A stretch of DNA of 64,000 nucleotides from Hyphochytrium catenoides (Eukaryota > Protista > Hyphochytriomycota): positions 1 to 64,000 of the forward strand of contig FLMG01000742.1 of NCBI GenBank assembly GCA_900088475.1, in the 5' to 3' direction. The notes beneath the pieces were generated by a model. That model was given only the letters and a program-made list of their open reading frames with translations. It ran no database searches and was not told the DNA's origin. Shown piece after piece: positions 744 through 62,184 of this stretch; the stretch's first letter is position 1; each line of letters begins with the position of its first letter. A program made the position numbers and the translations under genes.

Positions 744-853
744 ACACAGATGGAGCGAGAGCGAGCGAGAACGGGGTAGAAAGACGGGAGAGGGATGACC
801 CGAACGGGTCGTGTGTCGTGTGTGGTGTGTAAGATAGATAGNNNNNNNAGCGG

Positions 854-886
<33 letters not shown>

Positions 887-2468
887 CAAGGCGAGCGAGA
901 AAGGGGTAGGAAAGAGAGAGGGACTTAACATGAAGAGAGAGCAGAGAGAGACAGGAAAAGACAGAAGGGAAGACGGATACATGGAAAGAGTGGGGAGGTA
1001 TTGGCGCAGAATGAAAGGTTGCAGCACTGTCCCCATCATTCCTTTCTCGGCCCTCCTCCTCCATGCTAAAGCTTTGGCTGTAGGTGTTCCAAGCTCTTCT
1101 GGAGCTGCTGATCACGACTGACCTAGGACCAGCTGTTCTCATTCCAAGTGCGCGATCCATGTTCCAGAGCCGCGCTGGGCTGGTCGCCTGCTTGATCTCA
1201 CAGCTCGAGACTATCGCGGAGGTAAACGGTCCGTCTCCTCTTCTCAATCCCTTTCAAATTCTCTCTCTCTTGTCCATGTCCTGTCATTCTGGTTCACTCT
1301 TCTTCTCTCTCCACGCTTTGTCTCTCTCTCTCTCCACCTCTGAGAATCGACCGGGGATCTGGAGTCTGTGCTTACAACGGACACTTCTGAAGGGCTCCTT
1401 GCTTTGCTCTTGGCTTGCTCTCTCTCTGTCTTTCTCTCTTCTCTGCCGCGGCTCTTACCATGTTTGCTGATGGCGCCGAGCTCTCTCTCTGGCTCACCAC
1501 CCAACCGCTCGTTTGCCCGTTCTAGGTGCTACGATATCTCTATCGTTATGCAGAGATGGACGATTCCGAGGAGCTAGTGAAGAAGCTACACTCAGTCCTT
1601 CTCTCTCATTGGGAAAGGCTGAAGGACGATGTGAGCCCAAGAGTCATTAGTCTCTTTCACATATTAACCATTCTACGCGTATGCGTCTCTTATGATCGAT
1701 CCTTCTCTCTCTGACACTGTCTCTCGATCCCGTCAACCTCTAACCAGGGAATGCCTCTCTCCCTTTCTCTCTCTCTCTGTTTCTCTCTCTCTCTCTGTTT
1801 CTCTTTCTCTTTCTCTTCCCATTTTATCTCTCTCCGGACCTTCCGTTCCTTGCGTCTCGCTTCCTCTTTCACAGATGCTACACTTTTTCCAGTTGCATTG
1901 CTCCTCCAGCCTTGAGCCGCTGAGAGTTCCGATGCAGCAGCTCATTGACGCGGGAACTCGCTGGATTCAGAGCTTCCCGGAGACACCGAGTGGCGAGGAC
2001 CAAGAGGACGAAGCAGAAGACGTTCCCGATGCTTTTGCAGTCCTAACAGAGCTCCTCTATATGCTTAGGACTCTCAATATCTCTCTCTCCCGGTAACGTC
2101 TTCTCGCTCTCCTTCTCTCTCATATTTCAGTCCTGCAAGCAGAGTGGGAGAGGAAGAGAGAGACAGAAGGATGCTGAAATTCTCTTCCTCATCTAACCCT
2201 CTCCCTACTCCTGATCTCTGTCCGTCTCTCTTATCAGCGCTCTCTATCCAGCATTTCTGCTTTTCTCAACCTCTCTCTTTCACTCAGTCTTTCTTCTCTC
2301 TTCGCAATGCCTCTCCCGCTCTCTCGGCTTCTCTCCTTACCTCTGGTTCCTCTCTCACTGCCGTGTTTCTCGCGCTTCTGTACTTATCCTTTATCTGCCC
2401 TCTCTCCCTCTTTCTCCTCCTCTTTCTATCTCATCCCCGTTTTCTTTCAACCCTACCGGTACTTTCTT

Positions 2469-42300: not shown

Positions 42301-45300
42301 CAGACACGTAACACTTAGAAAAGAGTAATAATTTAAGAGGGGTCTCCAGCAAGCGTTTGAGATCATAATACAGGGTATGACGAATGAAGACGAGTCCTTG
42401 CATACCGACAACGTCCTTATACAGATAATCGGTGAACTTGTTGGTCCATTTTGAGGCCCAGACTCCGACTGCTGACTTGACTGGTTGGCAGTTGACGCGA
42501 AGCCACCAGCAGTCTACAATTGGCCGAAGAGCAGCTACAGCCGCTCCTACCTCGGAATATTTTCTAATTTCTTGGTCGAACCGGGCAAGGTCCAGGAATA
42601 CGTTTCCTGTGGGTGACGGCTTCTGCAATAGCAGAGAAGATAGGAAAGGTGCGATACTGAGCAGACGAATATGTGGCCATCATAGTCATAAATAACCTCA
42701 GCTTCCTAGAAAAAGGACTGAACTGATTGACAAAGCAGAGGAGGATTCGTTATGGGCAACCCCTTCGAGTCTTTAGCTTTAAGAGGGGAGCGACGGCGAA
42801 CCTTGGCCTCTTTTAGAAAGTTCTGGAAGATAGCCTCCATATCTGTATCCCAGAGATAGGAGAAGTGCTCATAGACCCCTTGCAGCTTACGAAGCTCCAG
42901 CTCATTTTCGGCCAGTTGTTCATTTATATTAGCAAGGATCATGCAGACCTAAAGAAGTGAAAGAGGTCGATAGGTCAGCGGTCTATCGCGGATCTATCAC
43001 TCACATATTACCTTGGTCTATAGTTGAATTACTTTCAATGATATTTCCTCTACGTACCTCAACATCCGCTTGCATTTCCCTCATAATTGTACCCTCTGCA
43101 TCCAGCCTTTTGACAATTGTGGATATCATCATAACGCTGTCGATAAGGCCATCGACAAACTCGCGCAAGCCTCGACCCCTCTCGGGAAATACGTTGGGCT
43201 GATATGCAAGCTCCATGGCTAGCAGTTAATAACATCGACATTCAAAAAAGTGGCGTAAGCAACATGGAAGCAGCGACTGTGAGAAAGCAACGCGATCAAA
43301 GATCGATCGCTGCTGAAGATCGAGACTTGCCGGAGCAGACTAAGTAGCTTACCGTTCTTTGTGCGGTTCAGCACTAGGTTCAGCTGGATTTCAAGCATCG
43401 GAGGGAGTTTGTCTTTCCCTTTTGCTCCTCTGGGGTCAATTTGATCCGCGAGCTGCTGCAAATTCGTTCGGATAGTCCTTGCAACACTGTACAAACAGGA
43501 AGGAAGAGAAGCAGATACTGTATGTAAGACCGCTATTCAAACCCTTCTCAACACTGTACAGGAACGAAGACAAGCAAAAAGATTTTTGCTCTTGAGTTGC
43601 ACGCTTACCCTTCGACGAGAATGTTATTGAAGAACTCGCCGTACGCCTTCCAATCTGGTGCTGTTGCTGAGACTTTTAGCACCTTGTTGCTCTCCTTCAC
43701 CAGCTTTTGTATCTCGCTCGACCCTTCCTTTATTTCACTGAACCTAGAAAGGAAACAGATGAAGAGTTAAGAGAAAAGGCATGCGAGGAGAAGTGAAGGC
43801 AGGAGCTAGTGCCGCTATCCTACCTTGCCGTCTTAATTGCTTTGTTCGCACGCTCAGCTTCTTCTACCGTGACAGGCTTATTCTTTCTCTCGATGATGGG
43901 CTTACTGTTCCAACTAAGGAGTATCTCCTCGGCCTATGATGCGGAGTGCACGGGCATCAATCTAAGTGTAGGTTCCATTCTGGGTGGGCAACACATTCTC
44001 CGTCATACCCGTGACACGTTCATCTTTAGTGTCGTCAAAATCTCATTGGCGGCTTTGACTGAGTCCATGCTCTCTTGGATAAAATCGTCGATGGCTAACC
44101 GTAAGGTACAGCAACAGAGGANNNNNTTACGGCCTTGATAAGAGGGGTCTCGACAGGCAGGATGGTGGTCATGACATTATTGTACATGCTCACTATAAGA
44201 TCCAAGTTACCGGTCCAGCGGCGGAACAACTGCAAGAGATGAGAATGAGATTACATTTGGCAGGTCACCTTACTATCATTGGGAAGGCTAAGAAGGGAGT
44301 GGCGGCAGAGAGAAAAAGTGACAGATTAGGTGATGATGCTACCTCTCCCTTCTGGTAAACTTGCAGGGCGGAGTCGGGGATGGTGTTCTTGAGGAGAAGG
44401 AAGTATTTGACCTCCCTCAGCAACCGGACCAGGGCGGGGTCAAAGTTGACCTAACGCAACCATTTGTCAGGACAAAGAAGCATAAACGGTAGGCATGAAG
44501 AAAAAGGATCTAATCTTAGGCAATAATGCAAGGTACTGATAAGGAGTAAGGCGGCCCTACCTGCACAAGCGAAGATTGTGGATCCCGACTAAGAAGATTA
44601 AGCTTCAGCTTAGCTTGCGACGAAGCCTCAACGTCTCGACCCCACTCTGCAAGCTTCTGATTCTCATACTCCTATAGAGAAGAATTTGATAAATGGGAGG
44701 TAGCCATAAAGATCTCCATGATGAGGATTGCAATCCACAATACGGGTGGCCCTTCCGCTCCTCGCTCGCGATATTTTTCAAATGCTTGTCTCCGACCTAC
44801 CTGGAGGCTGGAAATTATAGCTGCGTACAGCTTACAGACTTCTTTTGACTCTTCCCTACGTGGCAATTGATACAACGACGTAGGTGACAGGGCGGCAGAC
44901 GAGGAGATGAGAAGGTTATTACAAGTTAACCAGCAAGATTCTATGCTGGTCGGACTGGCACTTTATAAAGCTTACAGGCTGTTGTCGGGTTTGAATCTTA
45001 TAAGTTCACCAAGGAAGATAGAAGTCAATGTCTCTCAGTGCAATGACCCAAGAAACAGCTGTTTTACCTGTCAAGTATTGATTTTTTGAACTGCTTTAGC
45101 TTGTCCATGGGCAGGTTGATCCTCTCGACCAGGCCGCGGCACCAAGTCAGAGCGCCCGCAATGGGTGGCAAATTGTGCGCGATAATAGGGTTGTCCCGGT
45201 GCTCAAGGAAGATCTCCTGAACTGCCTTCAAATCTTGACTGTATGCCTGGACGAGAGCAATGTGTTTCTTTTCAAGCTCGTCTTGAATGATAGGTCGATC

Positions 45301-48073
45301 TAGGAATCCATCAAAGCTATCAAGAAGCTTGAACTTTCCCATGATGGTAGCGCAGTCATCGAACGCCTAGAATGGGAGGGTAGACGTAATGGGACAAAGA
45401 GGAGGAATCAGACGGTTGTTAGAGCATCCCTTGATGTGACTTCAACGGTAAGAAAGATAGTAGCCGGAAGGCTCAGGAAAAGCTTCCACAAGAGCCTACC
45501 TGCACCATAACAGAGCCTAGTCTTCTCTCTAGCTCCTTGATCCGGGTCCTAAACTCATAGTAATCCTCCTCAAATTTCTTTGCTCCGACGTCCATTATGT
45601 CATAAGGCACATGCTGGAACTGGTGCACCGCAGCCTACACAAGCAGGTGACCCCAAAATACCGAAGCCAAACGGTAAGTGGAATAAGTGCATCGAGGAGA
45701 TAAAAGAAGCAGTGATACGGATCAAAAGCACACAGGAGACATAGAACCAAGCAGCCACTTACGAGAAACTCGCTATGGATTTGCTGGACGCTTTGCGTAA
45801 GGTTTTTCCCTTTCGTCCCTCCAATCTCAATTTTTGATAGCTTGCTGAACTGTTTGTCCGCCAAAGTCGCAAGGTCAGTCCATACGGTGGCGGAAGCTAG
45901 CGAAGCAGTACGTACATAAAGAGAAGACTAGCGGTAAGGAAGACAGGAAGTATCGGATGGGAGGCACAGTACAGCTGCTTGGAGAGTATAACTTATCCGG
46001 CAACGGAGCATTCAACCACTAACCTGAACGATGGTCTGAGTGAGCTCAAGGATATCGTGGCAGCGCTCAAGAAAGCTATCGAGTCGCAGAAAAAGAGCAC
46101 TATTTTGCACCCGCCAGGTGTTGTTCGGACACTCAGCGTTGGCAGTCGCCTTGTAGTCAAAGTATGTGCTCTTGAATTGACCGCACACTCTGAGAGTTAT
46201 CTTGAGCTGGTCAACAGCAGTAGCTGGGGAGGAGAAAAGAGAACTTAGTCGTGGTTTGAGCTTCTACCGACCACGCTTGTTACTTTTGCCTGCGATCAGA
46301 CTGTGGTATGACCTGCGTTGCTTCCTATCGGTATTTTTAACACGAATGCACCTTACAACGTCCCGTCCAGTCTTTTACCTGCTTCATCACTCTCAATAAG
46401 CTGCCATATCTGCTGCCCGTTAAGGTACTTCGTCGCTTGATTGATCACCGCATTGCAGATCTCTCTAATAAGGACGACAAGCCGCGCAGGAGTGTTATAG
46501 TGCTTGCTATTCTTCCATATCAGGAGTATAATGTGCAGCATGGGTTTAAATAGCTCGTGAAGAGATGGGAAGTCTGAGCAGTTATTAAGGCGGCTGAACC
46601 AATCCTCCAGGGTGCGCAAGTACTTCATATTGTCATTTGCTGCATGCAAGAGAGAGCGAAGTCGAAAGCCTTAGTTTGTAGATTTCTGGGGAAAGTAAGT
46701 TATGCAAAGAGCGATGGAGTAAGTAATTGCTACACAGTCAAACGCTAAGGAATAGGCTTTAGAGCAGTGTAGGTAACTCTATACTGATGGCCGATAGCAC
46801 TCGTAGTGTTCCTTCGAGCTCAACTCATACCTTCCAAGCGTGCAGCAAAAACCTCTTTACACAGTCTAGCGAAAGTACTGCAGTAGGTGCTTTTCGATTG
46901 ATCGAGAGCACGCAGGACCTTGCGCACTGTGGGTTTCTGACCGTCATCATTAGCAACAAATATCGGGCATTCGAGGCACAGCGCAAAGGAGACATAATAC
47001 CTGAAGTTGATCGAAGACGTAATTAAGATTTACTGCCTTCACTCTCCAAAATTCAAGCTCCTTCTCAGGAGTAGGATGGTGTCCTTGCTTTAGAAGGGTC
47101 TCAGGATCCTGACCGCGTTGTTAACAACACAGAGTGAAAAGACGTGAGCTGCCTATGAAATATGCAAACAACAAGAAGCGTATCTTAGTGTATTCGTTGC
47201 AACTGTACTACCTGCTTGAGCACATCCTTGATTTGCTTGGTCCAGGTGACAATTGCGCCTTCGAGCACTGAGATACGGTTCTTCAGGTCTTCGTTGGGGT
47301 CGTCTGTGGTGTGGGGAAGAGGAAGGACCGGCTTTCCCTGATGGTATAAGAAAGATGGGACGACACGTTCAGGAATAAGCGGAAAGGACGATCCACATTG
47401 CGAGGCAGATAGGTGGCAAACCTACCTGTAAATGGCCAGCTGTGATCGCAACAACTGACATGTAGTTCTGGAACTTATCCATGATGTCTTTTGTGACCAT
47501 CTCACCCCAGGCGGCCGAGTTATGCGGGTTAGTGAAGATCGGCAGGTAGATTTCCTCAGCAACTCTTGAAAGTTGCGCTATCGTTGCAATGGCAAGAGAT
47601 CGCAAGAGTAGCCGTTACCCTTGATCCGAAGAGATCAATAACTCAGTGGCCTTACCAATTGGTTCAGAGTCTATCTCGGTACAAAGGACCACTTTATCAA
47701 AATTGTCCTTATCCAGCGCCACTGACTCCGATTTCACGAATGAGATGCTCTTCCCTTTGTTGAACTTTGACGGCATAGTTAGGGAGGCAACTACATTTTC
47801 ACTGGAGAATACCAAGTAGATTCTCTCCGGGGAGCTGATGAACTCGGACATCACCGACCTTGATTGATCAGCAGAAGGTGTTAACTTGTCAGCGAGTGCG
47901 AACAGCTCTATCCTTTTTCGTAAGCTAAATCCCTACATATTCTCCTCGGTGTCGAAAGATTTCTTGAACCTGGCTAGCTGAAGATGCTTGTAAGCTGTAC
48001 ACACTTTTGCCTCGATCAGTGGTACGCATGCGTTCGCCTGCTGCCCGGCGGCAGGCACAGGAGGTGACGGCAT
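24328..48073 (-). CDS. ODA4: Axonemal outer-arm dynein heavy chain, beta type (Chlamydomonas ODA4 / DNAH9-11-17 group), ~80 exons
   Basis: ATG at 48073 ([12 protein letters not shown]), TAG at 24330-24328. DHC_N1 tail ([17 protein letters not shown]), linker (FPRFYFVSN), AAA1 GPAGTGKT and CFDEFNRI / [23 protein letters not shown]2 GPAGCAKT and [20 protein letters not shown]3 [11 protein letters not shown]4 GVGGSGKQS, stalk/MTBD (ELKSLPKPP), AAA5 ([12 protein letters not shown]), AAA6 ([11 protein letters not shown]), C-terminus [32 protein letters not shown] traced about 79 introns; some coding sequence is hidden in N gaps at 42054-42117 and 44122-44126. The subtype is from recalled motifs. 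Confidence 0.95.
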
Positions 48074-49726
48074 GATTGCGTGCTGTTATGGTCCTTCAGA
48101 GGGAGTGGTTATGCTGGAGCGGTAACAGGCTGGACCAACGTCAGGACAAAGTGAAAGGAATCATTCCTAGAACAATAGCTAGCACACTGGGGAATCGCGA
48201 CAATGGGCCAATATAGCGGCACACCACCGCTGTCAGCTAGAAGAACTAAAAGAGCCTGGTACTCGATACGTGAGAAGTCCAAACTCCGAGATAGAGTGCG
48301 GGAACAGACTGATGCTGCTGCTGGTGCTGAAGTTCTAGTTTGACCCTGGATCCTTGGGTCGGAGCTGCAGATAGCAGGCAAAAGGTTGAAGGCTCGGACA
48401 GCGGCGCGATCCGAGGCGGCGGAAGGAGGAGGAGGAAGTGCGCTGGCAGGAAAGGAAGAGTCGGGCCGCTGTGACCTTTGGGCAACGGCAGATCCAGAAT
48501 ATCAACAGAACAATGCCCACAAAGCTGAGAGTGTGAAAAATGGGTTAATTGACAATAGGCCTGGTTTGACCGTTTCAGGTAGGCAGTCTGTCATCAAGTG
48601 GGGGCATGGGGCTGGTTACAGCTCTGGTTACCCAACAAAAACTCTAGGAATATAACGTTACTCCTGTGTGATCCCTTTATTTGTGTGTGTTCCTGTTCAC
48701 TCACTTTACAGTAGGGCAATCGCTCCTGCTACTTTCCTCCTCCTAAAACGGAAAAATAGGCAATGCTAACTACTGCGAAGGAGGCTCTCTTGGTCTCATC
48801 AGTAACTCTTCGCCATCACGGTCATTATTAGCAGGACTCTGCGTTGAACACCTCAGCCGTAACATCTGCAGCAAAGAAAGAACCACCAGCCAGTCAACAA
48901 TCTAGACAAGGCAAGCAAAAGAAAGGAATCGCTTCAGAAAAGGAGGTCCTAGTATTATGAAGACCGAAAGCCATGACGGCCAATAAATATGAGGTTGAGA
49001 AGCATCATGTGAAGGGCGACGATCACATCCTTGTTGAAGCTTCACAATCCGCTGCACACCGGGCGTTGCCCTCTCAACGTCTCCCAACTACTAGTAGGAC
49101 AAGCGGCAGCCCCACAGCCTTAGAGAGAGCTTTATACTTCGTCAATTGGTATTCTCAGAAAAGCGCCCTGATAGTAGCCGGCATGGCTGCTGCCGAACGA
49201 AGAGTTCTGGATTGCAGGTCTTGATGGACACATTAAAGCGGTGTGCTGAAAAGTAGTTCAAAAGCCTCGAAGCAATAAATGTTTTCTAGGCCTCTGCCGG
49301 AAGGAGGTGACGAGGTTCAAGAGATAGCTTTTGAAGTTCCGATGAAGCCATGATTATCTCAACTCGAGCGACGACGACTAAGCCATGATGATTCTTGAAG
49401 GCATCAATTAACAGAACTCCTCTGACAAGAAGCAGCAGTGCGCGCAAAAAGATGAACATCTAATAACAAACGCCAACATCACTCCAAAATCGAATGCCGA
49501 TGATCAAACCTTCCATTGAAGCCAAAGAATGGGAAAAACCGGACGAAAAGCCCCCGTGTTGGGTGAGAACTAGCTCATAAGCGAGCCTTCGAACGGAAGG
49601 TCTAGTTTGCAGAAGACAAGAGGGCCTTGGCACCCGTCAATCGAACAGATTGAGATAGATATAGGGTGCAAAGAAGGACGAGAGATAAAGCTGAGACATC
49701 AGATACCGCAAATACTTTACTGGCCC

Positions 49727-50107
49727 CGCCCTGCGAGAGGCCAAGTGAGTCTTCGAATCCCCGTTGCATGACTGTCAGCCTTCCCATGCAGCTGTATACG
49801 TTGTTCCCCTGTACCTCTCTATCATTCCTCATCAGACCCTTCCAAAAAAAAAGAGCTCCGTTCCCCCCGATGGGTGGCCACCACTAGCCCTTACCGCTGT
49901 AGTAGCCCAAGCCGCATGCACCTTTTCACCATTAGCAAGCATCGTTTGGGTGATCAGAGTAGCCGACCACGGGTGTTCTATTTTCATAGCAGGCCGTCTG
50001 ATGAGGAATGAAGGTAGGGCACAGTGGAAGGTATACATCATCTGCATGGGGAGGCTGCTGACAGTCATTCAACGCTACTCGAAGAGTCAAATGGTCTCTG
50101 ACAGGCG
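49727..50107. repeat. Diverged long inverted repeat (arms ~49727-49837 and ~49996-50107, spacer ~158 bp); possible old MITE/foldback element
   Basis: Left arm cgttgcatgactgtcagc-cttcccatgcagctg-tatac..tcattcctcatcagac aligns with the reverse complement of the right arm, cgttgaatgactgtcagcagcctccccatgcagatgatgtatac..tcattcctcatcagac. Confidence 0.8.
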
Positions 50108-51623
50108 ATGGCACTTATTATCGTTCACCTACCATCCTCCTCCTCAGCCTCAAGCAACAGCTATAACCTCTCTTATGAAAACCACAACCCCTTGAGGAAG
50201 AAAGGCTCAGAGGAGAGAGGTGATGTGCTCAGTAGACAAGGCTATTGCCTTCACCATCCTCATGGTTCCAGGAAAGAAGCTTTTGAAAAGCGTCTTTCTG
50301 GCCAGAGCCTCAGGCTTGATTGGCCCGACTATCCGAAAGGTTGCTAGTGGGAACTGCATGATCAGAATTAGAGGACAATATTAATGGCGACGCTGCCCTC
50401 TGTCAACAAGTCAGCCTTGGTTAATTTGTTAATTCCTAACAGCTTTCTGCCGCTTAAAAAAGTCACTTGGTCGCCCTCTCACCACGTCGCCGTGAGAGAG
50501 AAAGATGGTGATGGTCCGCTGCAGCTCGTTTACAAGGACATACGTCGTCCCAGCACTATCACGGAAACAGAAATGGACCTGAACAGGACCAGTGAGCCGT
50601 ACTACTATGCAATGGAGACTTCTGCTACTCTTAGTAGCGTCTGCTGATTGTCATCCACAAAATTTCGTCTAAGACAACAACCAAGATATGTTTCCTAGCA
50701 TTAGAGAGAGAGGAAGAGAACGTTCTCCGTCCCTCCTCCTTATGGTGGACAGATGTCTCCCCCGTATTAAGCGCAGACAGAAGTGTTGAAATTGCCGCTG
50801 TCGCATTCTATCGATCTCGACAAGGCTTCAAGTGACTGAGTCAGGGCTTGGCCACGACTTGGGTCCTTGAAGCCAGAACCAGCCAGTAATGGTCGTTCTC
50901 TTGCTTACCTAAGGCTGGCACCTACCAGTTATTATTTGCGGGACGGACTACATTAGCTCACTTTTTCCTGCTTCAGCGGAGGAGTGATTGTGGACGGCCA
51001 AGTATGGGGCCTTGTGTGTTGAGATGGCAGGATGTGCAGGCTCACATGCTGGAAGGCCAGACATACATAGGCATTCACGGGGCAGAGGCGGTACCAATCC
51101 ATTGCGCTGCGGAAATAAAGAACGACAACTGATATACCGTTCATTGATACCAGAGCTGACCAGAGCCGGAGTTTTAAGGTTTGTTCCTGTTTCTCGCGAA
51201 CTATTGCTTGTTGACGGTTGGAATAAGTTCCTTTCACTGATGAGCTGCTTCCTGATTTTGGGAGATATGGTGGTGGTAAGTTGTGAAAGATACTTGCAGA
51301 CGAAGGGGAGAGAGGTCGAGCACGGAGTCGCCACACGAAGAAGACAGTAGTTACACATGACTTATTAGCGGCGTTTGACAATACCAAAAAGGAAGTAGAT
51401 ACATTTGATGGCGGCGGGTGATGTCAACAGTTCTTGAAAGGGAGCGCTCACTCTACCATATCATTTAACATCTGTTATGAACTCAATAATTTTGAAATGC
51501 TCGAATATGCTGCTCTTTGCCCCTCAACACTCCCAGCAGGGACGACGGAGCAAGCTCCGACTCCCAATCTTCAATTAATTTAGCCTTTGGCAGCTAGGAC
51601 AGGTGCTAGGTGAAGTAGCCATT

Positions 51624-51929
51624 CTAGCAGTCTGTGACCTTGAAAGCCTTCAGGTCCTTCGAGGCGGTTTTGGACCAGTCAGGGCAGCTAAAGCCAACCT
51701 GGCTGCCGCAGCCAGAGTCCGAGAACAGCCGAATGCAGCAAGACTCCGACCATCCGCGGTCCCACTCGAACTTCTGGCCCGCCTTGTGGTTGATTTTCGT
51801 GCATCCCTTGTTCTTTTTGCCATCAGCGACGTTTCCGTTTCCGTAGACGAAAGTCCAGGCATCGGTGGCTGGCAAAGCTGCCGCGCTGAGGAGGGCCACA
51901 ACGGCGCACGCTGCTGCAATAATCTTCAT
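51624..51929 (-). CDS. Small secreted cysteine-rich protein, 101 aa (24-aa signal peptide + 77-aa mature domain with 6 Cys), possibly beta/gamma-crystallin/killer-toxin-like
   Basis: Intact intronless ORF MKIIAAACAVVALLSAAALPATDA|WTFVYGNGNVADGKKNKGCTKINHKAGQKFEWDRGWSESCCIRLFSDSGCGSQVGFSCPDWSKTASKDLKAFKVTDC; ACC-ATG start context, classical signal peptide, even Cys count, mostly G/C-ending codons. Confidence 0.85.
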   Translation of the reverse strand: MKIIAAACAVVALLSAAALPATDAWTFVYGNGNVADGKKNKGCTKINHKAGQKFEWDRGWSESCCIRLFSDSGCGSQVGFSCPDWSKTASKDLKAFKVTDC

Positions 51930-54900
51930 GGTTTGGTAAATAGAACGTACGAGGTAGGTAGGCTTTGCAGTTGGTGGTATGGGGAGGACCGGCCTTTGGC
52001 GACAGGCGGAAAGTTGTTTACTGAGGATGCTGTCTCGCCTCATTTACAGGTCAAAGGAGCCTCAGCCCGACTGCTGCTGTGCTTCGAGATAGTAGTACGA
52101 ATAGTTATTTTACTGCCTGCCTCGTCCCCTGTGTGGTTATTAGGCAGGACCTGTGGACGACGAGCATCAACTCAAGGAGTTAGCCACAGGGTCTGGCACA
52201 AGGGCATGATCTCTCAAAAATGTTTCCATCTTGTTGCGCTTCTTCCCACCTCGCCAAGGAGTAGCCTCCCTCTCGTCGCCAATGGTGGAAGAAGTTGCAA
52301 AAAAAGTCAAGGAGATGACAAGGTAGGTCAGGTCATTGTGATAAATGGCGACAATAATACATTATTAGTCAAGGCAGACGTAGAGGAAAGAAGTAATTGT
52401 AGAGCAGGCGAATCTTCCAGGGTCGCTCCCCTTAATACTACGCGACATTTTTATGAAGGTGGCCATGCCATGCCCAGCGTCCGCCCTTAGAAATCCGGCA
52501 GGACGATACACTTTTCACCAGACAATGAGCAGGGACGACCTCATCTACTGGATCCAGAGTCCAAACGCTGTCTTCTGCCTCCAGGAGTTTGAGGTTGAAA
52601 GTTCCTTCTCCCTCAGCGTTCTTCAGAGAGAAGTCGATGCAACGACAAAGAGTCAGCGCAGTTCTATTTCCTACAGGGAAGGTGGAAGGAAGGGTTCCCA
52701 GTAGTTGGGTTGCAGAGTAGAACTAGCGCCGTCTTCCATTGGTGGTAGGCAGTACAAGTAGTACTGTCGAACCAGTCGTCTTTCCTCTGCTGATGATGCC
52801 ACTCATGAGGAAATGGAGCAGCTGTACATCAGGCCGTTTTCGGTCTTTAGCATGCCATGACCTCCTGCTGCCTAGTACCACCCCAGAAAACCTGCATCCA
52901 TCCAAAGAACAGTTCTATCACCACTGAATCCGTAAACGCGTAGTCGTCATTATACTTACCCTAACCTAGGAGGCTCATGTACGAGCGCCAAGACAAAGCT
53001 AGGCGGTTAACCATATCGTTATTGCACCCTGTGGTCGTCTCCATTATGCGAGTGCGAGGAAGAAAGCGCGACGAAAAATTGTCCTTTCCTTTGGTCAGCG
53101 CTGGACGACAATCAGTGAGCTTGACTCCTCCAGCTACTGACGACCACGGGCGAGGTGACGAGGTGACGATAAAAGGGACTCAAGCTGGACTGAACTAGAT
53201 GGATCTAGCTGATCTTTGCTGATCAACAAAGTCGTGTGGTTCCTCCACCCACAATCTCATACACAGTCCCATGAACAGCACCGACATGATCATCTCCACG
53301 CTACCTGTCCCACTGCATTGTCGCAGTTCTCCATTAGCAAATAGAAGGACGGCGAACAGTCATCCAGAAGCAAAAAGAAAGACAAGATGACCCTCTTCTC
53401 ATTCCCTTCGCTCCTATTGGTGCTTTCCGGCGTTTATGAAAAGGCGGTCCAAGTATACTGGTGTGGTCCCTATAATGTTCCTTTGGCCACAATATTACCC
53501 CTAGATGATGTCTATAACCGCGCAACGCGCATCCAGCAGACCACCATGATGGCGTGGTGAGGAAGCGGTAGGTTCTTGGGCATTCGGATGTGAGCGGGGC
53601 CATCCGTGCCAATCATGGTGCTTCTTCCATTTGGTCCCCACAGTGTCACGTCAGCTAGGGAGAGGGCGGGGGCTACTACTACGGCCGGGGTGAGGCTTCT
53701 CAAACAACAACGTTATGGCTAGGAACTTTTTAAAGTTTGTGGGTCCAATCGCCCACCACCATATATATATATATCGTGGTCACCACATCAAGAAGGAAGA
53801 ACAACGCCTAATAGGGTCTTATCACTGTCCAAGATGAGGATGTTTTGGCCCAACACTTCTGCACTTTGGATACTGCAGTGTAGGCGGAGCTAGAAGGAGA
53901 GAATGGAGGCTCGGTGGTGTGTTCTAACTACTAGAAACGGAGAATCAAGATGAACAATCAAGATGGAGAGTGATGGAGTATGGATGACCATTGCTTTGGA
54001 CCAGAACGCTGCTCAGCTACTAGTATTCTGTTTTCTCTTCCTCAGGAGGCCAATGAGCTGAGGTTACTCGTAGCGTTGAAAAAGAGGCAGCCGCTGCCGC
54101 ATAGATCTATCATAGAACTATGCCTTCGGCTGCCAGTAGTGTGGAGCGTCATCGCCTCCTGTGATCGAAGTATCCAGTGTCCTGCAGAGCGCCACCATGG
54201 TGCCTTCTGTGGCTTGGAGGGGAGCTCGTTGAGAATTGGGCATCAACATCATCAGGACAGCGGTGGTGCCCAACAACAGCAACGGATAATCTTACTGAAG
54301 GATCAGAAGGATCTGGATATCCGTGGGGCATAACGACGGGAATTGAGGGTGCAAAGAAGGATGAAAAGTCCTACCTCCTCTTCGGACCTCCTCAAAGCCC
54401 CTCGTCTCTCAGCAGGTCAGTAGAACTAGTTAGCGATGCAGGAACTCTGTGGCTGAGGGTGTGAGGTGTAGTATGAACCAAATGCAGAAGAAGAAGAAGA
54501 AGAGAAAGAACCGGAGCAGCAGGTGGTTTCGGATCGCTTGTCGGATGCTATGAAACACAAGAACAAACAAAGAAGAGAGCCTGGTAATCTAGCGAGCGCC
54601 TTCGTAAGGTGGCGGAGACCTCCTCCCACTAACTCTTGATCTTTGTGCAGCGCGACGTAGTTCTCTGCGTGTAAATAAAGATGCCTTTTTCCCTTGCTTG
54701 GTCAAGATTTTTTTTCCACTCGTCTCTTCCATCCAGTTTTAGCCGCTTCGTTTGTTTCTTTCTTTCTCTGCTGCCCTGAACATCATTATTATGCTTCTTT
54801 TGGTGCCAAGATAACTTGAGGGCAGCCAACAGTAGTAGGAGAGGAGGAGAAGAGGACAACGTCGAGGAGGACGACAAATACGACTTCGGCGTAGGAGAAA

Positions 54901-56732
54901 GCTTCTCACAACAAGGGACAAAAGAAGCGGACGGTAGAGTCAGCAATAGGGAGAAGGATGAGTGGTCGAAGGTGGCGATATTGAGAGAGAGAGGGAGAGA
55001 GAGGAGAGACAGAGAGAGAGAGAGAGAGAGAGAAAGTGAGAGGCAAGAAGAAGAATCAGGAGGAGTGGAGGCTGGGAGAAATACTCGTCCTAAGAATGGA
55101 GGAATAGGAAGAATCCGTAAGCGATAGGGAGATAGCGATGAGGAAGACGGAGGGGAGGCAGCTGGGAGACTAGCTCCCATGTCAAAGAAGGCAAGCAGCA
55201 AGAACGGAGACGGCTGACTGTGAACTAAGGTCATGAGGGCTTCCGCTTCTCTTGTGCCGGAAGCATGCACCACATGGCCTAGCTGACGGCACTTACGACG
55301 CTGGGACCGGGTCTGGACCGCACAGTTCCGCTTGCCACTATCCATGTGACGCTACATAGGCCGCGCGTAACCCAAGAGCACCTAGCACGCCAGAGGTTTC
55401 CATTGCTCGATCTTTTGTGACGCAACCCTGTGCTGGCGCTAATCATAGGACTGATGCGGTCAAATAAGAGCCCTGAAAGCGATCGAAGGGGAGCTATCTC
55501 TGTTGTTTGTGGGAGAGGGAACGAGATATAGATATAATTTTTCCTACTTGCCTTCTCTTTTTATAAGAAACGCGGGCTGCTAAGTTTGGCTCCGCGCGGA
55601 ACTCTAGCCAGGACTCTAGCAGTTGCCTGGTACTAATAAAGTGACCGTGGTTGGAACAGTCGCAGGGCCTTTTGGGCTTTGCTAGAGCGGCCAAGCCTCG
55701 AGCTGAAGGACCTCGCTTTCAATGAGGTTCCCCATTGAGGTCAGCGGCACTTGCCGTCACTGCGGCTTTACCGCACACCGTCTCGCTCGCAGTCAGGTTA
55801 TGTAGATCATCTTTGTAGGTAGAGACGAGCTACAGCATCATAGTGTATAGGCGTATAGTCTACATAGGAATATATGATAGCTTAAAAAGCCGAAATCGGA
55901 GCCAGCGACGTACCTCCTGTCTCTCACTTTGCAGGGAATCGAATTGAGTCCTTACGATTGGCTTACAATCACTTCCCTCTTCTGATAATGAACAGAGCTC
56001 CCTGCTGTTTGTGCGACCTCCTCTCACATTCCTTTGCTATCTTGGTCAGTGTGAAGGCACATCTATAATGAGGACAGAAGAATTAAACACGGTTCCTTCA
56101 CGCAGGTTCTCTGACTTCAGGTCCACGTCTGCCACCATGGTCTTTCTCTAGGATGACGAGTAGCGGCGATTATAATTGAGACACATTAGTTAACTGCGCT
56201 ATGGCCGCAAAAACAAGTGGCAGCAGCAGTGTGCAAAAGGGAAGCTTACAGAGAGTGACGAGCAAGAAGAGACCCACCAACGCAACAAGAAGCGCAGGGC
56301 TGAGGCACGGTCAGTACTGGCTGTTTGTCACTCCTCCCGTCAGTAGATCTTCACAAAGCATCCACAGCAGCAGCCAGAACAAGGGAGAAGTGACAAGCAC
56401 TGGGAGATGACGAAAGGCTTGAGGTTAACGACGATGAGAGCCAGGGTCCTTTCACCAGGAAGCTAAGGAGTGACCGCCTTTCAGCCTTGATCATCTCCCT
56501 TTTCTCCCTTGGAGAAATCAACGGCTATTGCCTAAGAAAAATGATGAGCCACGGACAAGATTGGGACAAAAGCAGGCAAAAGCTGTCTCCACTGTAGATT
56601 ATTGACTAGCTATAAGGTGGTGTCGATATTAACTAAGATAAAGGCAATCGGATCACTACGCAGCGGCTCCCAGTTGCCTCAGTTCTATTTCCATCTTCAG
56701 CCATGGTAAGAATCAAATATGGTGAGTGGCTC

Positions 56733-59340
56733 CTACGTAGCGGGTCGGGCAGGGGTTACGACAGGCAGCCCTGAGGTCAGGTTGGTGGTCACCAGCGCCA
56801 GCTGAGCGTCTGTCAGCGCAAAATCAAAGAAGAAGAAGGCAGAGAGGTCGACCGATGCCTCATTTGAAGCCGTTGTTGACTGACCGACGTGCCAGGTGGA
56901 CAGACTTCGGTCTCTCAGAGGAGCCGAAGCTGTGACCGTGGCCAGAATCACACCGTTCTTATAGCCTCATGACTGCCCACTGCTGCGATTGTATCGCGCC
57001 GCTAATGTCGCCCATTCGTTCCGGACAATAGCTCCTGCGCTGCTCTTACAGTCTGCAATCGTGATGCCTTCATTGAAGGAATGAACTTCAGCGCCCTGGT
57101 GCTGCCACTGCGTCTAAACGGCAGGTTATCAGGCGATGCGGTAGTAGCCGTGCCAGCAACCAAAATGGTCTCAGAGGTGCCTGGCGTGCTACCTATGAAG
57201 CGCAATAATAGCGCCACAATGGTCAGCCGGCCCACCGCTGAGAGGCAGCGCTGTGAGATTCAGGTCTCTTGAGAAAGTAAACAATCGCTGTCTGGCCGTC
57301 CGAGTGAAGGAGTAGATTGGTCCATTCACCAAGCCTCCCAGGGGGCTGAAGCGAGGTGCAGTGCTGACATTTGATGCAGAGGCAACGTTGCCCCATTTCA
57401 AGACTGCAGAGTCATCACTCTGGCTGAGCTGCGAGGCTTGTAGATAGAGCGACTCAGTAGTGAAAGGGAGGACAGTGGTGACACTGCCTGGTGGCGCCGG
57501 AAGCACACGAGAGACGTTGATTGGCATGTGGGTGTGAGGCTGGTGGAGACTTTCTGGGTCAGCTGGCTGTCGCTAAGGCAGAAATTAAACATGTCGAAGG
57601 AAGTAGTCCAAGTGAGCCGTGCTAGGCACACCAACGGCAGCCTGTCCTGGCATCCACCAGACGCTGACCGACCTATTAATGAGTACAGCCTCAACGCTGC
57701 CAACGCTCTGGCCATTCTTCAGCAACTCCGCCCTACGAGTTGATGCTGCGTAGCGGAACGAACCCATAGACAGCCCAGATGCCTTCTTCTGTGACGCCAG
57801 CGCCACTGACAAGGCGGAAGTCTCCTTCTCCCGCAGCACTGTGTGCTTGGAAAACGAGGTGATCGGAAGCGCTTACCCTACCCTAACCCTTTGCTATAGA
57901 AGACGGGAGCTGATGCACTGGAAGTGCTGCTCAACCGTTCCCAGAAGCCAACAGCACTCCGGTTCTCTTGATTAGATTGTGCCAAGGCGGACGCGGATAG
58001 TTGGACCGCAGAAGAGTAGAACGGTGGTAGGATGGAGACAGTTGCCCCGGTTGGAAAGGTAGCAGAAGTATCTACCGGGAGACTGGTACTGAGATTGGAA
58101 GAGAGCGCGAGCAACTGGCTGTTTGACAGCGCAAACTCATAGCCATAAAGGCGGCAAGATCAAAAGTGCCATGGTTCTGCTGCGCTAACCCTAAACAGCC
58201 GTTAGAGAATTCGGTGAACGCTGCGTGGCGCCCGGAGTATCCCACACTGAAACCATCCCTGATCATCTCTGCCCCTAGTGTTACATTTGAATATCTGAGG
58301 GCAAAAACTGTCCATTGATTGGGAAGGATAGCGCCAGGTTGACTGATGAGAGTCAGAGCGCGAGTACTGATTATCATAGTCAGGGCGAGGTGGCTGGAGT
58401 TCCCATATCTTCGATGGGCGAGAGTCCAGTCCAGGTTCGACCAGGGACGCTGGTACCAACGCTGAACAAATGCTCATCAAAGACAGGCGTACTCGAAGTA
58501 AAGCTTCCCAGCATGAAGCCTGTGAAACCGCTCTTGGAGGCGACGAGGAATAGATTTACAGTGGCAGCTGTCTCCAGAAACTGCTTATTCTGGCTGTTGA
58601 AGTGTAGGGGCAATTTCTATGGCCACCATTGGATCGGAAGAGCGGTTGCCGGGCACTGGGGCTGGCTGAACTGGCCCCACATTGAGAGTCCAGAGTCATT
58701 GCCTTGAGAGGGCAGCAGTGGGGCCAAGGGGCACTGCGCAGGATATGTTAGTGGAATTTCAGCTGGCAGCGGGGTTGGAGAAGGCGAGATAAACGTTTGT
58801 CCGGCGGGAGGGATAAGATACCATCATCCTCCGGTCTCAAACACATCCGCTGGAGGAGGAGCCTGTTGTAAGGTGGGCTGAGGCGTTGGCTGTGGCGATG
58901 GCTGCGGCGTTGGCTGCGGCGTTGGCTGGGGAGTTGGCTGCGTTGTTGGCTGCGGAGTTGGCGCTGGNNNNNNNNNNNNNNNNNNNNNNNNNNNNNNNNN
59001 NNNNNNNNNNNNNNNNNNNNNNNNNNNNNNNNNNNGATGGCTGCGGAGTTAGCTGTGGAGTTGGCTCTGACGATGGCTGCAGAGTTGGCTCTGGCAATCA
59101 TAGCTGCTGAGTTGGCTGCGGGGTTGACTGCGAAGCTGGCTCTGGCGATGGCTGTTGAGTTGGCTCTGGCGATGGCTGGTGAGTTTGCTCTGGTGATGGC
59201 GGCGGCGTTGGCGGCGGCGTTGGCTCTGGCGATGGATCAGAAGTTGGATGCGGAGTTGACGATGGAGTTGGAGGAGCTGGCTGCGGAGGTGGCTCTAATT
59301 GGGCCGGTGGACTGTTCGGGACTCGGCAATTCTTGTCTGC
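56733..59340 (-). pseudogene. Decayed extracellular protein: PT/PS-repeat stalk followed by three tandem LamG/concanavalin A-like domains
   Basis: The PTPQP/PSPEP array is interrupted by TGA (59100-59098), with more stops near 58825 and 58380 and several frameshifts. Three homologous units end TFDLAAFMA/YEFALSNSQL, SFDMFNFCLSDSQL and SVDLSAFFFFDFALTDAQL, and share W...P.F...GG..N.P and KNG/RDG motifs. Confidence 0.7.
58876..59290 (-). repeat. 12-nt-period coding minisatellite (PTPQ/PSPE)
   Basis: Repeats of ccaacgccgcag / ccatcgccagag around the N gap at 58968-59035. Confidence 0.9.
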
Positions 59341-60889: not shown

Positions 60890-61204
60890 ATATATAGAAC
60901 AAAATGATGATGATATAGTTCCATGTCATCACTTCCACCACAGCTACCCCTGTCCATGTTGTGATGACTGTACCAATCCAGCTGAGAGACTGTTTGTACG
61001 CCACTACGGGTGGAGGGAGGCAAAGGTCACGGTGAAGTCTGTCTATTAACACCACTTTCCACCGAGATACCCGATGCAGTACGACATGGTGTGACCCCAC
61101 TGTACCTGCTGGTGATAATCAAGGTATAGATAATCACAATAAAAGACCCAGTCAGATGCAGTGGTCTCCTGGGTTTTTGTACAGTAATAACTGTGAGCGG
61201 CAAC

Positions 61205-61455
61205 GTCCAGCGGCAGTGTCCAGTGGCAGTGTCCAGTGTCCAGTGGCATTGTCCAGCAGCAGTTCCAGCGGCAGTAGTTGCCAGCGGCAGTGTCCAGCGG
61301 CAGTGTCCAGCGGCAGTGTCCAGCGGCAGTGTCCATCCAGCGGCGGCAGCAGTGTCCAGCGGCAGTAGTAGTGTCCAGCTAGCGGCAGTGATTAGCGGCG
61401 GTGTCCAGCGCCGCCGGCGCGGTGGTAGAGTCCAGCGGCAGTGAGCAGCAGCAGT
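61205..61455. repeat. 13-bp tandem minisatellite (GTCCAGCGGCAGT), ~15 copies
   Basis: Perfect and variant units are directly visible, e.g. three consecutive perfect copies at ~61291-61330. Confidence 0.92.
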
Positions 61456-61506
61456 GACGACCATCATCATCCAGAAGCAAATAAAACTCTAAAGCCGTCG
61501 CTGCTG

Positions 61507-62184
61507 ATGGCACCACCCCGAAGAACAAGGATCCGACAAAGATGCACCGAAGAAGGCTGCACAAACATTGCTCAGATAAACACTTTCTGCAAGCGCCACG
61601 GGCGACTTCATGGGCATCCGGCTCCCACGAAGAAATGCTCTGTTACGGACTGCACCAGCCTATCACGGTCTCGATGCCTGTGTCGGAGGCATCAGCAGCT
61701 GAAATGTAAGATTCCAGAATGTACAGGCGGTTATAGCCAGCGAGGGCTCTGCTATGGCCACTGGAGAGCAAGTACCCAACAACAAGCTCGTCCTCCTCCA
61801 CGGTCTGACGAGAAGGCAGATGAAGATCACCGAGAACTCCAAAGACTTCGGAATAGTAATGAATGCCTCGCGCAGCAGCTGGAGTCTGCACTTATGGACT
61901 GCGCGTATTTGGAACAGCTACTCTACACAAAAAGCGCACAGCTGACCAACACCGACAGGCAGGAAGATGCAGTGGAGCAAGACCCGGATCCGGACAGTCC
62001 TCAAGAAGACGTCGCAGGAGTACCATCAGCAGCACCTGTTGCTCGTTGCCGTCGACCTATGAACATCAAACAAGAACGCAAGTTCTGTCGTGATGATATG
62101 GTTTGTGCTCCCTATAAATATGAGCAGGAAGAAGCGTCGCCTTTTCCTCGTGTCGGGCAGCTCTTTGCGTGCCAAAAGCCTTGA
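61507..62184 (+). CDS. Intronless protein with three WRKY19-like C-x4-C-x9-C-x2-H zinc fingers and a leucine-zipper-like coiled coil, 225 aa
   Basis: CTEEGCTNIAQINTFCKRH, CSVTDCTSLSRSRCLCRRH, CKIPECTGGYSQRGLCYGH; basic N-terminus (PPRRTRIRQR); heptads in RELQRLRNSNECLAQQLESALMDCAYLEQLL. First in-frame ATG at 61507. Confidence 0.75.
   Translation: MAPPRRTRIRQRCTEEGCTNIAQINTFCKRHGRLHGHPAPTKKCSVTDCTSLSRSRCLCRRHQQLKCKIPECTGGYSQRGLCYGHWRASTQQQARPPPRSDEKADEDHRELQRLRNSNECLAQQLESALMDCAYLEQLLYTKSAQLTNTDRQEDAVEQDPDPDSPQEDVAGVPSAAPVARCRRPMNIKQERKFCRDDMVCAPYKYEQEEASPFPRVGQLFACQKP

Follow-up and report, generated by a model that had tools for sequence, protein, structure and literature searches.

A probably fungus-derived gene for a small secreted protein of predicted crystallin fold in the stramenopile Hyphochytrium catenoides

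The window analysed, a stretch of 64,000 nucleotides from contig FLMG01000742.1, carries an intact Hyphochytrium catenoides gene that was probably captured from fungi and that appears to encode a secreted protein of the crystallin fold. In the explanation proposed here the precursor would enter the secretory pathway by means of a 24-residue signal peptide and release a compact, all-beta protein of 77 residues held by three disulfides. The Hyphochytrium lineage would have acquired the gene from a fungus and have kept it functional since. Outside the cell the domain may serve as a binding module, with polysaccharide of microbial cell walls as its most plausible ligand, and the free form might act in competition with, or defence against, neighbouring microbes rather than as a host-directed effector.

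Fungus-to-pseudofungus transfers have been invoked for the convergence of "pseudofungi" on the fungal lifestyle, and 16 Fungi-to-Pseudofungi transfers were inferred in one study (PMC13345962). Few fungal genes have been found in the lineage that is sister to the oomycetes, and the gene described here joins them as a clean candidate with physical linkage to host sequence. It also exposes a large fungal family lacking a Pfam model, with secreted and anchored forms, a confidently predicted fold like that of MiAMP1 and a pattern of disulfides that can be inferred. This is not a new kind of system, as both fungal crystallin-fold secreted proteins and fungus-to-pseudofungus transfers have already been described.

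The gene, its product and its family

The stop-to-stop open reading frame at this place occupies positions 51624–52043 of the minus strand (139 aa), within which the following features were assigned.

51627..51929, minus strand: coding sequence of the 101-aa precursor, single exon, with the stop codon at 51624–51626 (translation, phmmer, family profile A2)
51858..51929, minus strand: signal peptide, residues 1–24, predicted cleavage Ala24/Trp25 (sequence reading, A2 alignment)
51627..51857, minus strand: mature 77-aa domain, residues 25–101 (AF2 model, VIA-align, Cys co-loss patterns)
51930..52043, minus strand: in-frame upstream extension of the mechanical open reading frame, probably a non-coding 5' leader (homolog alignment)

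The coding sequence was set at these limits because the second in-frame Met, at 51929, is the starting point of all homologs in the alignment; the N-terminal extensions present in some database homologs bear no relationship to one another. An earlier note, made from the sequence alone, had placed the gene at 51624–52030; an open reading frame does exist there, but its upper ~100 nt belong to the upstream leader and not to the coding sequence.

The signal peptide was called by reading the Hyphochytrium sequence together with the homolog alignment. It comprises Met-Lys, a hydrophobic core and Thr-Asp-Ala before Trp25, with small residues at -3 and -1, and a junction of Ala-x-Ala followed by Trp-Thr-Phe is common to the homologs (alignment A2). 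A seventh Cys of the precursor sits inside this peptide. The mature part contains six Cys (residues 43, 64, 65, 74, 82, and 101), four Trp and 12 Lys/Arg vs 8 Asp/Glu, a net charge of +4, so that the secreted six-Cys mini-protein of the earlier note is confirmed in its signal peptide, mature length, Trp content and charge. All of the positions conserved in the family (W25, C43, G51, W56, C64, C74, G79, and C101) are retained, and the gene almost certainly encodes a real secreted protein of this fungal family. It is intronless, as had also been reported, but a single exon of 306 bp is weak as evidence, since the mean exon of H. catenoides measures 228 bp (PMC5795050) and the four fungal homologs whose coding sequences were read are single-exon as well.

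The family was revealed by an exhaustive HMMER search rather than by word-indexed searching, which returned no homologs with the single protein and just 5 proteins with the profile. Against 1.84 billion protein representatives phmmer gave 117 matches at E <= 1e-3 and 45 at E <= 1e-10, the best being P0001 (E 5.4e-31, 58% identity over residues 13–101). In turn, profile A2 matches exactly the range of the coding sequence, at E 2.1e-33, and in its alignment the signal peptide before Trp-Thr-Phe, Gly-Cys, Trp-Asp-Arg, Cys-Cys, Asp-Trp and the last-residue Cys are present and in register. The family has no Pfam model: the Hyphochytrium protein matched no Pfam family at E <= 10, crystallin models included, and 39 short members gave scattered sub-threshold noise only, PF09117 being absent at E <= 1. 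Neither the single protein nor profile A2 retrieved anything beyond chance matches in sequence searches of the PDB. At least 112 eukaryotic clusters at 50% identity belong to the family after removal of five long bacterial matches (P0068, P0074, P0101, P0107, and P0108) as false positives; P0101, P0107, and P0108, when scanned, proved to be multi-domain proteins without a crystallin-type domain, two of them with PKD repeats. A previous profile, A1, included the stalk and transmembrane helix described below and therefore matched 32 spurious sites of the host genome as well as PDB chains of mucin or transmembrane type. These matches were discarded, and the genome and PDB searches were redone with the domain-only profile A2.

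Two forms of the family can be distinguished: one is free, secreted and of ~100 aa, and in the other this domain is carried by a mucin-like, Ser/Thr-rich stalk that is anchored once in the membrane. All homologs with an organism name are fungal (Ascomycota and Glomeromycota) and come from Polyplosphaeria fusca, Aspergillus granulosus, Helicocarpus griseus, Gigaspora margarita, Dentiscutata erythropus, and Penicillium soppii. The contig of P0002 carries a gene for a highly reducing polyketide synthase and that of P0006 a gene with a Fungal_trans domain; the statement "only fungi" is based on the six species and on the fungal markers of these two contigs, as most of the 117 homologs come from metagenome or read-archive assemblies without an organism name. 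Look-alike clusters in the Atlas belong to Ascomycota and Basidiomycota. The resemblance to secreted proteins of filamentous fungi and oomycetes proposed in the earlier note thus holds for the fungi, while no oomycete relative occurs among the matches whose source names the organism.

Predicted fold, disulfides and related proteins

The earlier note had guessed at a beta/gamma-crystallin or killer-toxin-like fold and had proposed AlphaFold and Foldseek as a check; both were run, and the predicted fold is of the crystallin type with MiAMP1 as the top Foldseek match. AlphaFold2 with an alignment of 98 family sequences gave a model of eight beta-strands at pLDDT 87.7, with means over 10-residue blocks of 89–98 from residue 21 on and of 93–98 from residue 31, the signal-peptide stretch being low (53–57); the single-sequence prediction (pLDDT 42) was uninformative. 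VIA-align placed MiAMP1 at Z 8.1 (rmsd 2.1 Å, 68/76 MiAMP1 residues aligned, 15% identity), followed by Protein S, IPSE, Neurospora APP, clostrillin, gamma-crystallins, WmKT (Z 5.9), SKLP (5.4), and AFP1 (5.2). A Z of 8.1 is "middling" by VIA-align's own scale; it convinces chiefly through the agreement of nearly all top rows on one fold, with crystallin-fold entries accounting for most of the best 28 (Z 5.2–8.1). Glycan-binding matches also appear, namely X409 of StcE (Z 6.1) and a fucosidase C-terminal domain (Z 7.1). On the strength of the model a crystallin-type fold of two Greek keys, closest to MiAMP1, is very likely.

The crystallin signature Y/F/W-x-x-x-x-Y/F-x-G is absent from the mature sequence as read: no Gly has Tyr/Phe at -2 together with an aromatic residue at -7, and in the second motif Cys74 occupies the aromatic position of the signature. 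The Ca2+-binding motif N/D-N/D-X-X-S/T-S is likewise missing from the mature sequence, as a regular-expression search showed. The cysteines of the 98 family members are lost in pairs. All six occur in 34 members, C64 and C101 are both lost in 40, C65 and C82 are both lost in 11, and C43 and C74 alone are left in 7; from these co-loss patterns we infer the disulfides C43-C74, C64-C101, and C65-C82.

MiAMP1, a plant seed protein of Macadamia integrifolia (PDB 1c01; PF09117), is likewise secreted and comparable in size (76 residues vs 77 here), has six Cys in three disulfides with Cys as its last residue, and also lacks the Ca2+-binding motif. To judge from the structural-alignment offset, the invariant C43-C74 would sit at the position of C23-C49 in MiAMP1. 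The remaining bonds would differ, being C11-C65 and C21-C76 in MiAMP1 and, by covariation, probably C64-C101 and C65-C82 here; moreover, there is no PF09117 match at E <= 10 and no profile match to the 1c01 sequence. The sole link to MiAMP1 on the sequence side is a language-model look-alike score of 0.85.

WmKT (HM-1), SKLP, and AFP1 share with the Hyphochytrium protein a single, disulfide-stabilized, secreted domain of the beta/gamma-crystallin fold and have antifungal activity, but their Z scores lie below that of MiAMP1 and their sequences show no similarity to that of the Hyphochytrium protein. HM-1 targets beta-1,3-glucan synthesis, and AFP1 binds chitin.

Among plant-pathogenic fungi, a MiAMP1-like or WmKT-type fold has been predicted for Ecp4, Ecp7, the C-terminal region of CfCE72 and CfCE44 of Cladosporium fulvum and for structural cluster 14 of Magnaporthe oryzae (bioRxiv 10.1101/127746; PMC9447291). 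These too are small, secreted, Cys-rich proteins without the N/D-N/D-X-X-S/T-S motif. The bonds modelled for mature Ecp4 (C16-C84, C35-C67, and C57-C99), when compared by published spacing, differ from those proposed here (C19-C50, C40-C77, and C41-C58 in mature numbering). Ecp4-type proteins are apoplastic effectors of pathogens, whereas Hyphochytrium is a free-living saprotroph.

The locus and the origin of the gene

The neighbourhood of the gene contains several features of the recipient genome.

45067..46649, minus strand: dynein heavy chain gene, 5' exons 45067–45342 and 46356–46649 (Pfam DHC_N1, E 6.5e-25 and 1e-28)
49076..49334, no strand assigned: dispersed repeat of the host, 2.3 kb beyond the stop of the gene, with ~70–77% identical copies on at least six other host contigs
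54983–55042, no strand assigned: GA microsatellite (tandem repeat) adjoining the repeat at 55155–55454
55155..55454, no strand assigned: host repeat, 3.2 kb upstream of the gene start, with copies on two other contigs at 69–71% identity

The dynein gene is split into short exons, of which pieces of 92, 98, and 211 aa match dynein Pfam models, and its exons lie 4–6 kb from the mini-protein gene. None of the flanking open reading frames is recognizable by Pfam, and no recognizable gene occurs within 3 kb on either side. The earlier description of the flanks as decayed is unsupported; they bear host dispersed repeats. A scan of the locus for bacterial promoters and terminators was empty, and is irrelevant. 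The mini-protein gene is present in a single copy and has no paralog in the host genome, the search with the domain-only profile A2 included. For the H. catenoides genome a SNP density of about 0.0275 per site has been published (PMC5795050).

A fungal origin by horizontal transfer is likely, and held with some confidence, because the host has just one copy and no paralog, and because fungi are the source of all homologs that can be assigned to an organism. The claim of the earlier note that the gene was acquired is therefore the best reading of a single-copy gene that occurs in a stramenopile, is linked to host genes and has named homologs from fungi alone. In the tree the Hyphochytrium protein falls inside the clade of short forms, split from the membrane-anchored long forms at 98/95 support, and stands there in a basal polytomy based on 80 alignment columns, with most tips lacking an organism name. 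The argument from nesting holds only if the long forms used as outgroup are fungal too; the contexts of long-form contigs are compatible with filamentous fungi but are no proof of fungal origin. The terminal branch of the Hyphochytrium protein (0.13) is the shortest in the tree, vs a median of 0.6. Synonymous sites are saturated with respect to the sampled fungal copies, which makes dN/dS uninformative and the divergence old; the transfer most likely took place long ago or from an unsampled donor, and part of the divergence may predate it. The gene seems to be kept under selection, since it is intact, retains all family-conserved residues and has a very short terminal branch. Codon composition does not settle the question of origin (GC3 of 0.735 in the gene, 0.48–0.56 in the dynein exons and 0.60–0.67 in host tubulin and HSP70 genes). 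A viral structure library gave nothing in support of a giant-virus vector.

Three other accounts of the locus must be weighed against transfer of a gene that is still in use. Joining of a fungal contaminant fragment to a genuine Hyphochytrium scaffold could be imagined, given that the assembly was made from short reads only and scaffolded with N gaps (PMC5795050), that the GC3 of the gene exceeds that of the neighbouring dynein exons and that the 4.9 kb from 50105 to 54969 have no second copy in the genome. Yet the only runs of N nearby are at 44122–44126 and 58968–59035, and the N-free stretch between them (44127–58967) contains the gene, the DHC_N1 exons and host repeats on opposite sides; similarity to the fungal loci (68–71% nucleotide identity) is limited to the 0.3-kb coding sequence and does not extend into the flanks, and the four contamination screens of the genome authors found no suspect eukaryotic contamination (PMC5795050). 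Because dynein exons and repeats on both sides lie in the same gap-free sequence, the gene is physically integrated in recipient DNA and an artefact of scaffolding is scarcely credible.

Vertical inheritance would make this a native gene, from a family that is old in eukaryotes or at least in stramenopiles and survived patchily, its other stramenopile members being unsampled or diverged beyond recognition. Non-fungal members may hide among the matches without a name, small and fast-evolving secreted proteins readily escape detection, and a position in a basal polytomy with a very short branch is compatible with such a history. On the other hand, the named homologs span Ascomycota and Glomeromycota, to which the Atlas leads add Basidiomycota, and the host has no paralog; the identity of 58–62% to fungal members is about that of fungal members among themselves, a poor fit to so ancient a divergence as that of fungi from stramenopiles. 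Inheritance by descent is accordingly very unlikely. Nor is it probable that the gene, once transferred, has become an intact-looking but unexpressed relic on its way to decay: the absence of recognizable genes nearby and of any family expansion would be in keeping with this, but the reading frame is uninterrupted, neither the signal peptide nor any conserved Cys, Trp, or Gly has been lost, the terminal branch is the shortest of all, and the synonymous divergence from all sampled fungal copies is saturated, even if part of it may be older than the transfer. We regard disuse as quite improbable.

Transfer from fungi would place the gene beside other acquisitions by stramenopile osmotrophs whose genes have fungal kin. 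Many reported acquisitions of oomycetes likewise have secreted products (PMC4447370, PMC4316629). Known fungus-to-pseudofungus transfers concern mostly enzymes or transporters with resolved phylogenies, whereas this one concerns a tiny protein whose donor cannot be named. The mini-protein was not found named in the main text of PMC4447370, PMC4316629, or PMC13345962.

Possible functions

A role in cell-wall binding or as an antimicrobial is possible and is put forward tentatively. The term "effector" is unlikely to apply, because H. catenoides is free-living (PMC5795050). The basic charge emphasized in the earlier note is real in the Hyphochytrium protein but is not conserved in the family, as the mature pI values of 39 short members span 4.1 to 10.1, and this wide variation argues against a conserved cationic antimicrobial mechanism.

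A gene of the same origin could instead encode a non-toxic module with a structural or sensing task, such as a wall-associated or glycan-binding protein at work on the organism's own wall. The variable charge favours such a role, as do the glycan-binding structural matches and the 40 of 98 members without C64 and C101, a pattern of the membrane-anchored forms, which resemble cell-surface sensors. The Hyphochytrium copy, however, is a free secreted form with all six Cys, and its closest structure and several others (MiAMP1, WmKT, SKLP, and AFP1) are antimicrobial or antifungal; a purely structural or sensing role is somewhat unlikely. A lead on function comes from the long forms, which possess a transmembrane helix and display the domain on a stalk of mucin-like type.

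A more far-reaching proposal, which we consider improbable, is that the family represents an undescribed, fungus-wide lineage of true MiAMP1 homologs, deployed both as a free weapon and as an anchored sensor, and that the free form, captured by Hyphochytrium from a competing fungus, has been kept nearly unchanged as an anti-fungal or wall-binding agent. If this were true, a pseudofungus would be fighting fungi with one of their own weapons. The protein is small and looks stable, and should thus be easy to express, which makes its binding and antimicrobial properties directly testable.

The mini-protein gene and its family

The mini-protein gene is intact and comprises a single exon within a stop-free frame of the minus strand (52043–51627, stop codon at 51624–51626), whose first in-frame ATG opens 139 codons and whose second, at 51929, gives a precursor of 101 residues; the range of 51624–52030 assigned to the gene in the earlier note contains it, on the minus strand, together with about 100 nt of upstream leader. 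Judging from the sequence, residues 1–24 (Met-Lys, a 17-residue hydrophobic run and Thr-Asp-Ala, ahead of Trp25) are laid out like a signal peptide, in which an extra, seventh Cys is located. The mature part comprises 77 residues with four Trp, Cys at positions 43, 64, 65, 74, 82, and 101 of the precursor, and 12 Lys/Arg vs. 8 Asp/Glu, in agreement with the earlier description of a signal peptide followed by a Trp-rich, basic, six-Cys domain. On the plus strand, a frame of 295 codons (51603–52490) overlaps the gene and its upstream region; it is probably an antisense reading, a by-product of the GC-rich third positions of the gene.

With this protein as query, Pfam gave no match at E ≤ 10 and a word-indexed search of 5.8 billion proteins retrieved no homolog, while phmmer against 1.84 billion cluster representatives gave 117 matches at E ≤ 1e-3, of which 45 reach E ≤ 1e-10 and a single one E ≤ 1e-30; the top match (P0001) is 58% identical over the full length. 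Five long bacterial matches were set aside as apparent false positives (three of the five were scanned and showed no crystallin-type domain, with PKD repeats in two). The other 112 constitute a single clear family, and the mini-protein thereby brings out a family that has no Pfam model. The common layout includes the end of the signal peptide, directly followed by a conserved Trp-Thr-Phe, and then Gly-Cys, Phe-x-Trp-Asp-Arg, a Cys-Cys pair, Leu-Tyr-x-Asp-x-x-Cys, Gly-x-Ser-Cys-x-Asp-Trp and a C-terminal Phe-Lys-Val-Thr-x-Cys; all invariant or near-invariant columns are retained in the window protein. Roughly half of the family members are free and 90–110 aa long (short forms). The remaining half, found among matches P0034–P0117, are long forms of 220–345 aa, in which the N-terminal domain is followed by a Ser/Thr-rich stretch, a single transmembrane helix and a short tail. 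The Ser/Thr stretches give sub-threshold matches to mucin-type single-pass proteins, and their layout recalls cell-surface sensors. The contig that carries the homolog P0005 has a second called gene (851–1159, minus strand) of exactly 102 aa, 470 nt off on the opposite strand, which could be a divergently arranged paralog.

The named homologs are from Polyplosphaeria fusca, Aspergillus granulosus, Helicocarpus griseus, Gigaspora margarita, Dentiscutata erythropus, and Penicillium soppii, and P0001 pairs with the Aspergillus protein in two of two trees. The contig of match P0002 encodes a highly reducing polyketide synthase in a gene split by short introns, that of P0006 a gene with a fungal-specific transcription factor domain, and next to two of the long forms lie genes for NmrA, pectate lyase, flavohaemoglobin, and sugar transporters on the same contigs, sets typical of filamentous fungi. 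Look-alike clusters retrieved by a language model belong to Ascomycota and Basidiomycota. Oomycetes and other non-fungal eukaryotes do not occur among the matches that bear an organism name, which are a minority. Of the likeness to secreted proteins of fungi and oomycetes proposed in the earlier note, only the fungal part is borne out by the named homologs.

Disulfide pattern and predicted fold

The presence of Cys at the six positions was tallied over 98 aligned family members. C43 and C74 are invariant; all six Cys are kept in 34 members, C64 and C101 are both missing in 40 (as in the long, anchored forms), C65 and C82 are both missing in 11, and C43 and C74 alone are kept in 7. The economical reading of this covariation is that the domain would contain three bonds, C43-C74, C64-C101, and C65-C82.

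AlphaFold2 without an alignment gave a pLDDT of 42; with the 98-sequence alignment it gave five concordant models of eight strands (mean pLDDT 86.8–87.7; 10-residue block means of 89–98 from residue 21 and 93–98 from residue 31). The top Foldseek match in the PDB was MiAMP1 (1c01, E 0.025), followed by gamma-crystallins, spherulin 3a, nitrollin, and the X409 glycan-binding domain.

Matches in the VIA-align structural search (48,161 chains, independent of Foldseek; by its own calibration a lone Z of 8 is middling only)
MiAMP1: Z 8.1, rmsd 2.1 Å, 68/76 residues
Protein S: Z 6.9
IPSE/alpha-1: Z 6.8
Neurospora abundant perithecial protein: Z 6.7
Clostrillin: Z 6.7
Ciona and vertebrate crystallins: Z 6.3–6.5
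WmKT killer toxin: Z 5.9
SKLP: Z 5.4
AFP1: Z 5.2

Because this list is uniform, the beta/gamma-crystallin fold predicted by the model is convincing, and the earlier guess of a crystallin or killer toxin-like fold is upheld by these searches, with MiAMP1 first and crystallins and WmKT among the matches. The family shows no sequence-level membership of the curated crystallin or MiAMP1 families and lacks both the Y/F-x-x-x-x-Y/F-x-G crystallin signature and the Ca2+-binding motif of microbial crystallins. By the offset of the structural alignment, only one of the three proposed bonds would have a counterpart among those of MiAMP1 (C11-C65, C21-C76, and C23-C49, as quoted in bioRxiv 10.1101/127746).

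Proposed function

The window protein would be secreted co-translationally and adopt a disulfide-locked double Greek key, and in the fungal long forms the same domain would be displayed at the plasma membrane on a mucin-like stalk, an arrangement that suggests a binding module rather than an enzyme. Some of the nearest structures, MiAMP1, WmKT and AFP1 among them, belong to proteins that bind the walls of microbes or act on them, and the VIA-align matches include two glycan-binding domains. Since the nearest structures include wall-acting or wall-binding proteins and glycan-binding domains, and the domain is stalk-displayed, extracellular binding of wall polysaccharide is the favored candidate function, with a putative antagonistic or protective role against neighboring microbes. 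The net charge of about +4 noted previously holds for the window protein but not as a family trait: the mature pI ranges from 4.1 to 10.1 across 39 short members, 17 of which are acidic, and charge is therefore not conserved and indicates no family-wide cationic mechanism. An effector in the sense of host manipulation is unlikely, given that Hyphochytrium catenoides is a free-living saprotroph.

A beta/gamma-crystallin fold has likewise been predicted for secreted proteins described in Cladosporium fulvum (Ecp4, Ecp7, CfCE72, and CfCE44; bioRxiv 10.1101/127746) and Magnaporthe oryzae (PMC9447291).

Genomic setting and descent

Features in the window
8484–10847, minus strand: 788-aa open frame
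44122–44126: N run
45067–45342 and 46356–46649, minus strand: dynein exons (DHC_N1)
49076–49334 and 55155–55454: dispersed repeats
49730–49837 and 49996–50105: inverted copies
51627–51929, minus strand: mini-protein gene
58876–59294: tandem arrays
58968–59035: N run
61196–61366: tandem array
61441–62181: open reading frame

The dynein heavy chain gene has many exons on the minus strand, with MT stalk and DHC_N1 matches; in the phyla to which the named homologs belong, Ascomycota and Glomeromycota, cytoplasmic dynein is the sole dynein known to be kept. The two N runs are those closest to the mini-protein gene, which therefore lies with the dynein exons in the same unbroken 14.8 kb. The gene is flanked by repeats dispersed over other contigs of the same genome, and likeness to fungal DNA is limited to the coding sequence (68–71% nucleotide identity), with none detected in the 2 kb on either side. 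A scaffolding chimera is excluded by the occurrence of gene, dynein exons and host repeats in one N-free stretch, and a chimera at the contig level is unlikely. The gene is single-copy in the host genome by sequence and domain-only profile searches.

Synonymous sites are saturated (pS 0.59–0.86 against four fungal homolog genes), thus no recent donor is present among the sampled fungi. GC3 is 0.735 in the mini-protein gene vs. 0.48–0.56 in the dynein exons; since it is only somewhat above that of host tubulin and HSP70 genes (0.60–0.67) and within the range of the fungal homologs (0.60–0.92), composition does not discriminate. In the tree, short forms split from six long forms (support 98/95), and the window protein falls in an unresolved polytomy of the short-form clade, on a terminal branch of 0.13 vs. 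a median of 0.6. With its open frame, its conserved residues all in place and a terminal branch this short, the gene is probably functional and slowly evolving. A share of the divergence may have built up in fungi, ahead of any transfer. Gene transfer from fungi to pseudofungi is an established theme (PMC4447370 and PMC4316629), and 16 Fungi-to-Pseudofungi events have been inferred (PMC13345962); the gene is a fresh example of a crystallin-fold secreted protein and of a putative transfer of this kind, not a new category.

Other elements of the window were recorded. The repeat at 49076–49334 (about 250 nt) recurs, with copies 70–77% identical, on six or more further contigs of the host genome. 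The inverted copies (about 108 nt, 74% identity, 160 nt between them), 1.5 kb past the mini-protein stop, possibly represent a foldback or MITE-like element of small size. The arrays at 58876–59294, with units of 12 nt and 24 nt (GGCTGCGGCGTT type), flank the N gap on either side and read as an Ala/Asn/Ser-rich repeat in one frame. The array at 61196–61366 (13-nt unit, 13.7 copies) stands directly ahead of the open reading frame of 247 aa, which matches PF24906 (WRKY19-type zinc finger, E 2e-10). The 788-aa frame has no Pfam match, and its GC by codon position (0.69, 0.60, and 0.49) is unusual and differs from that of the dynein exons.
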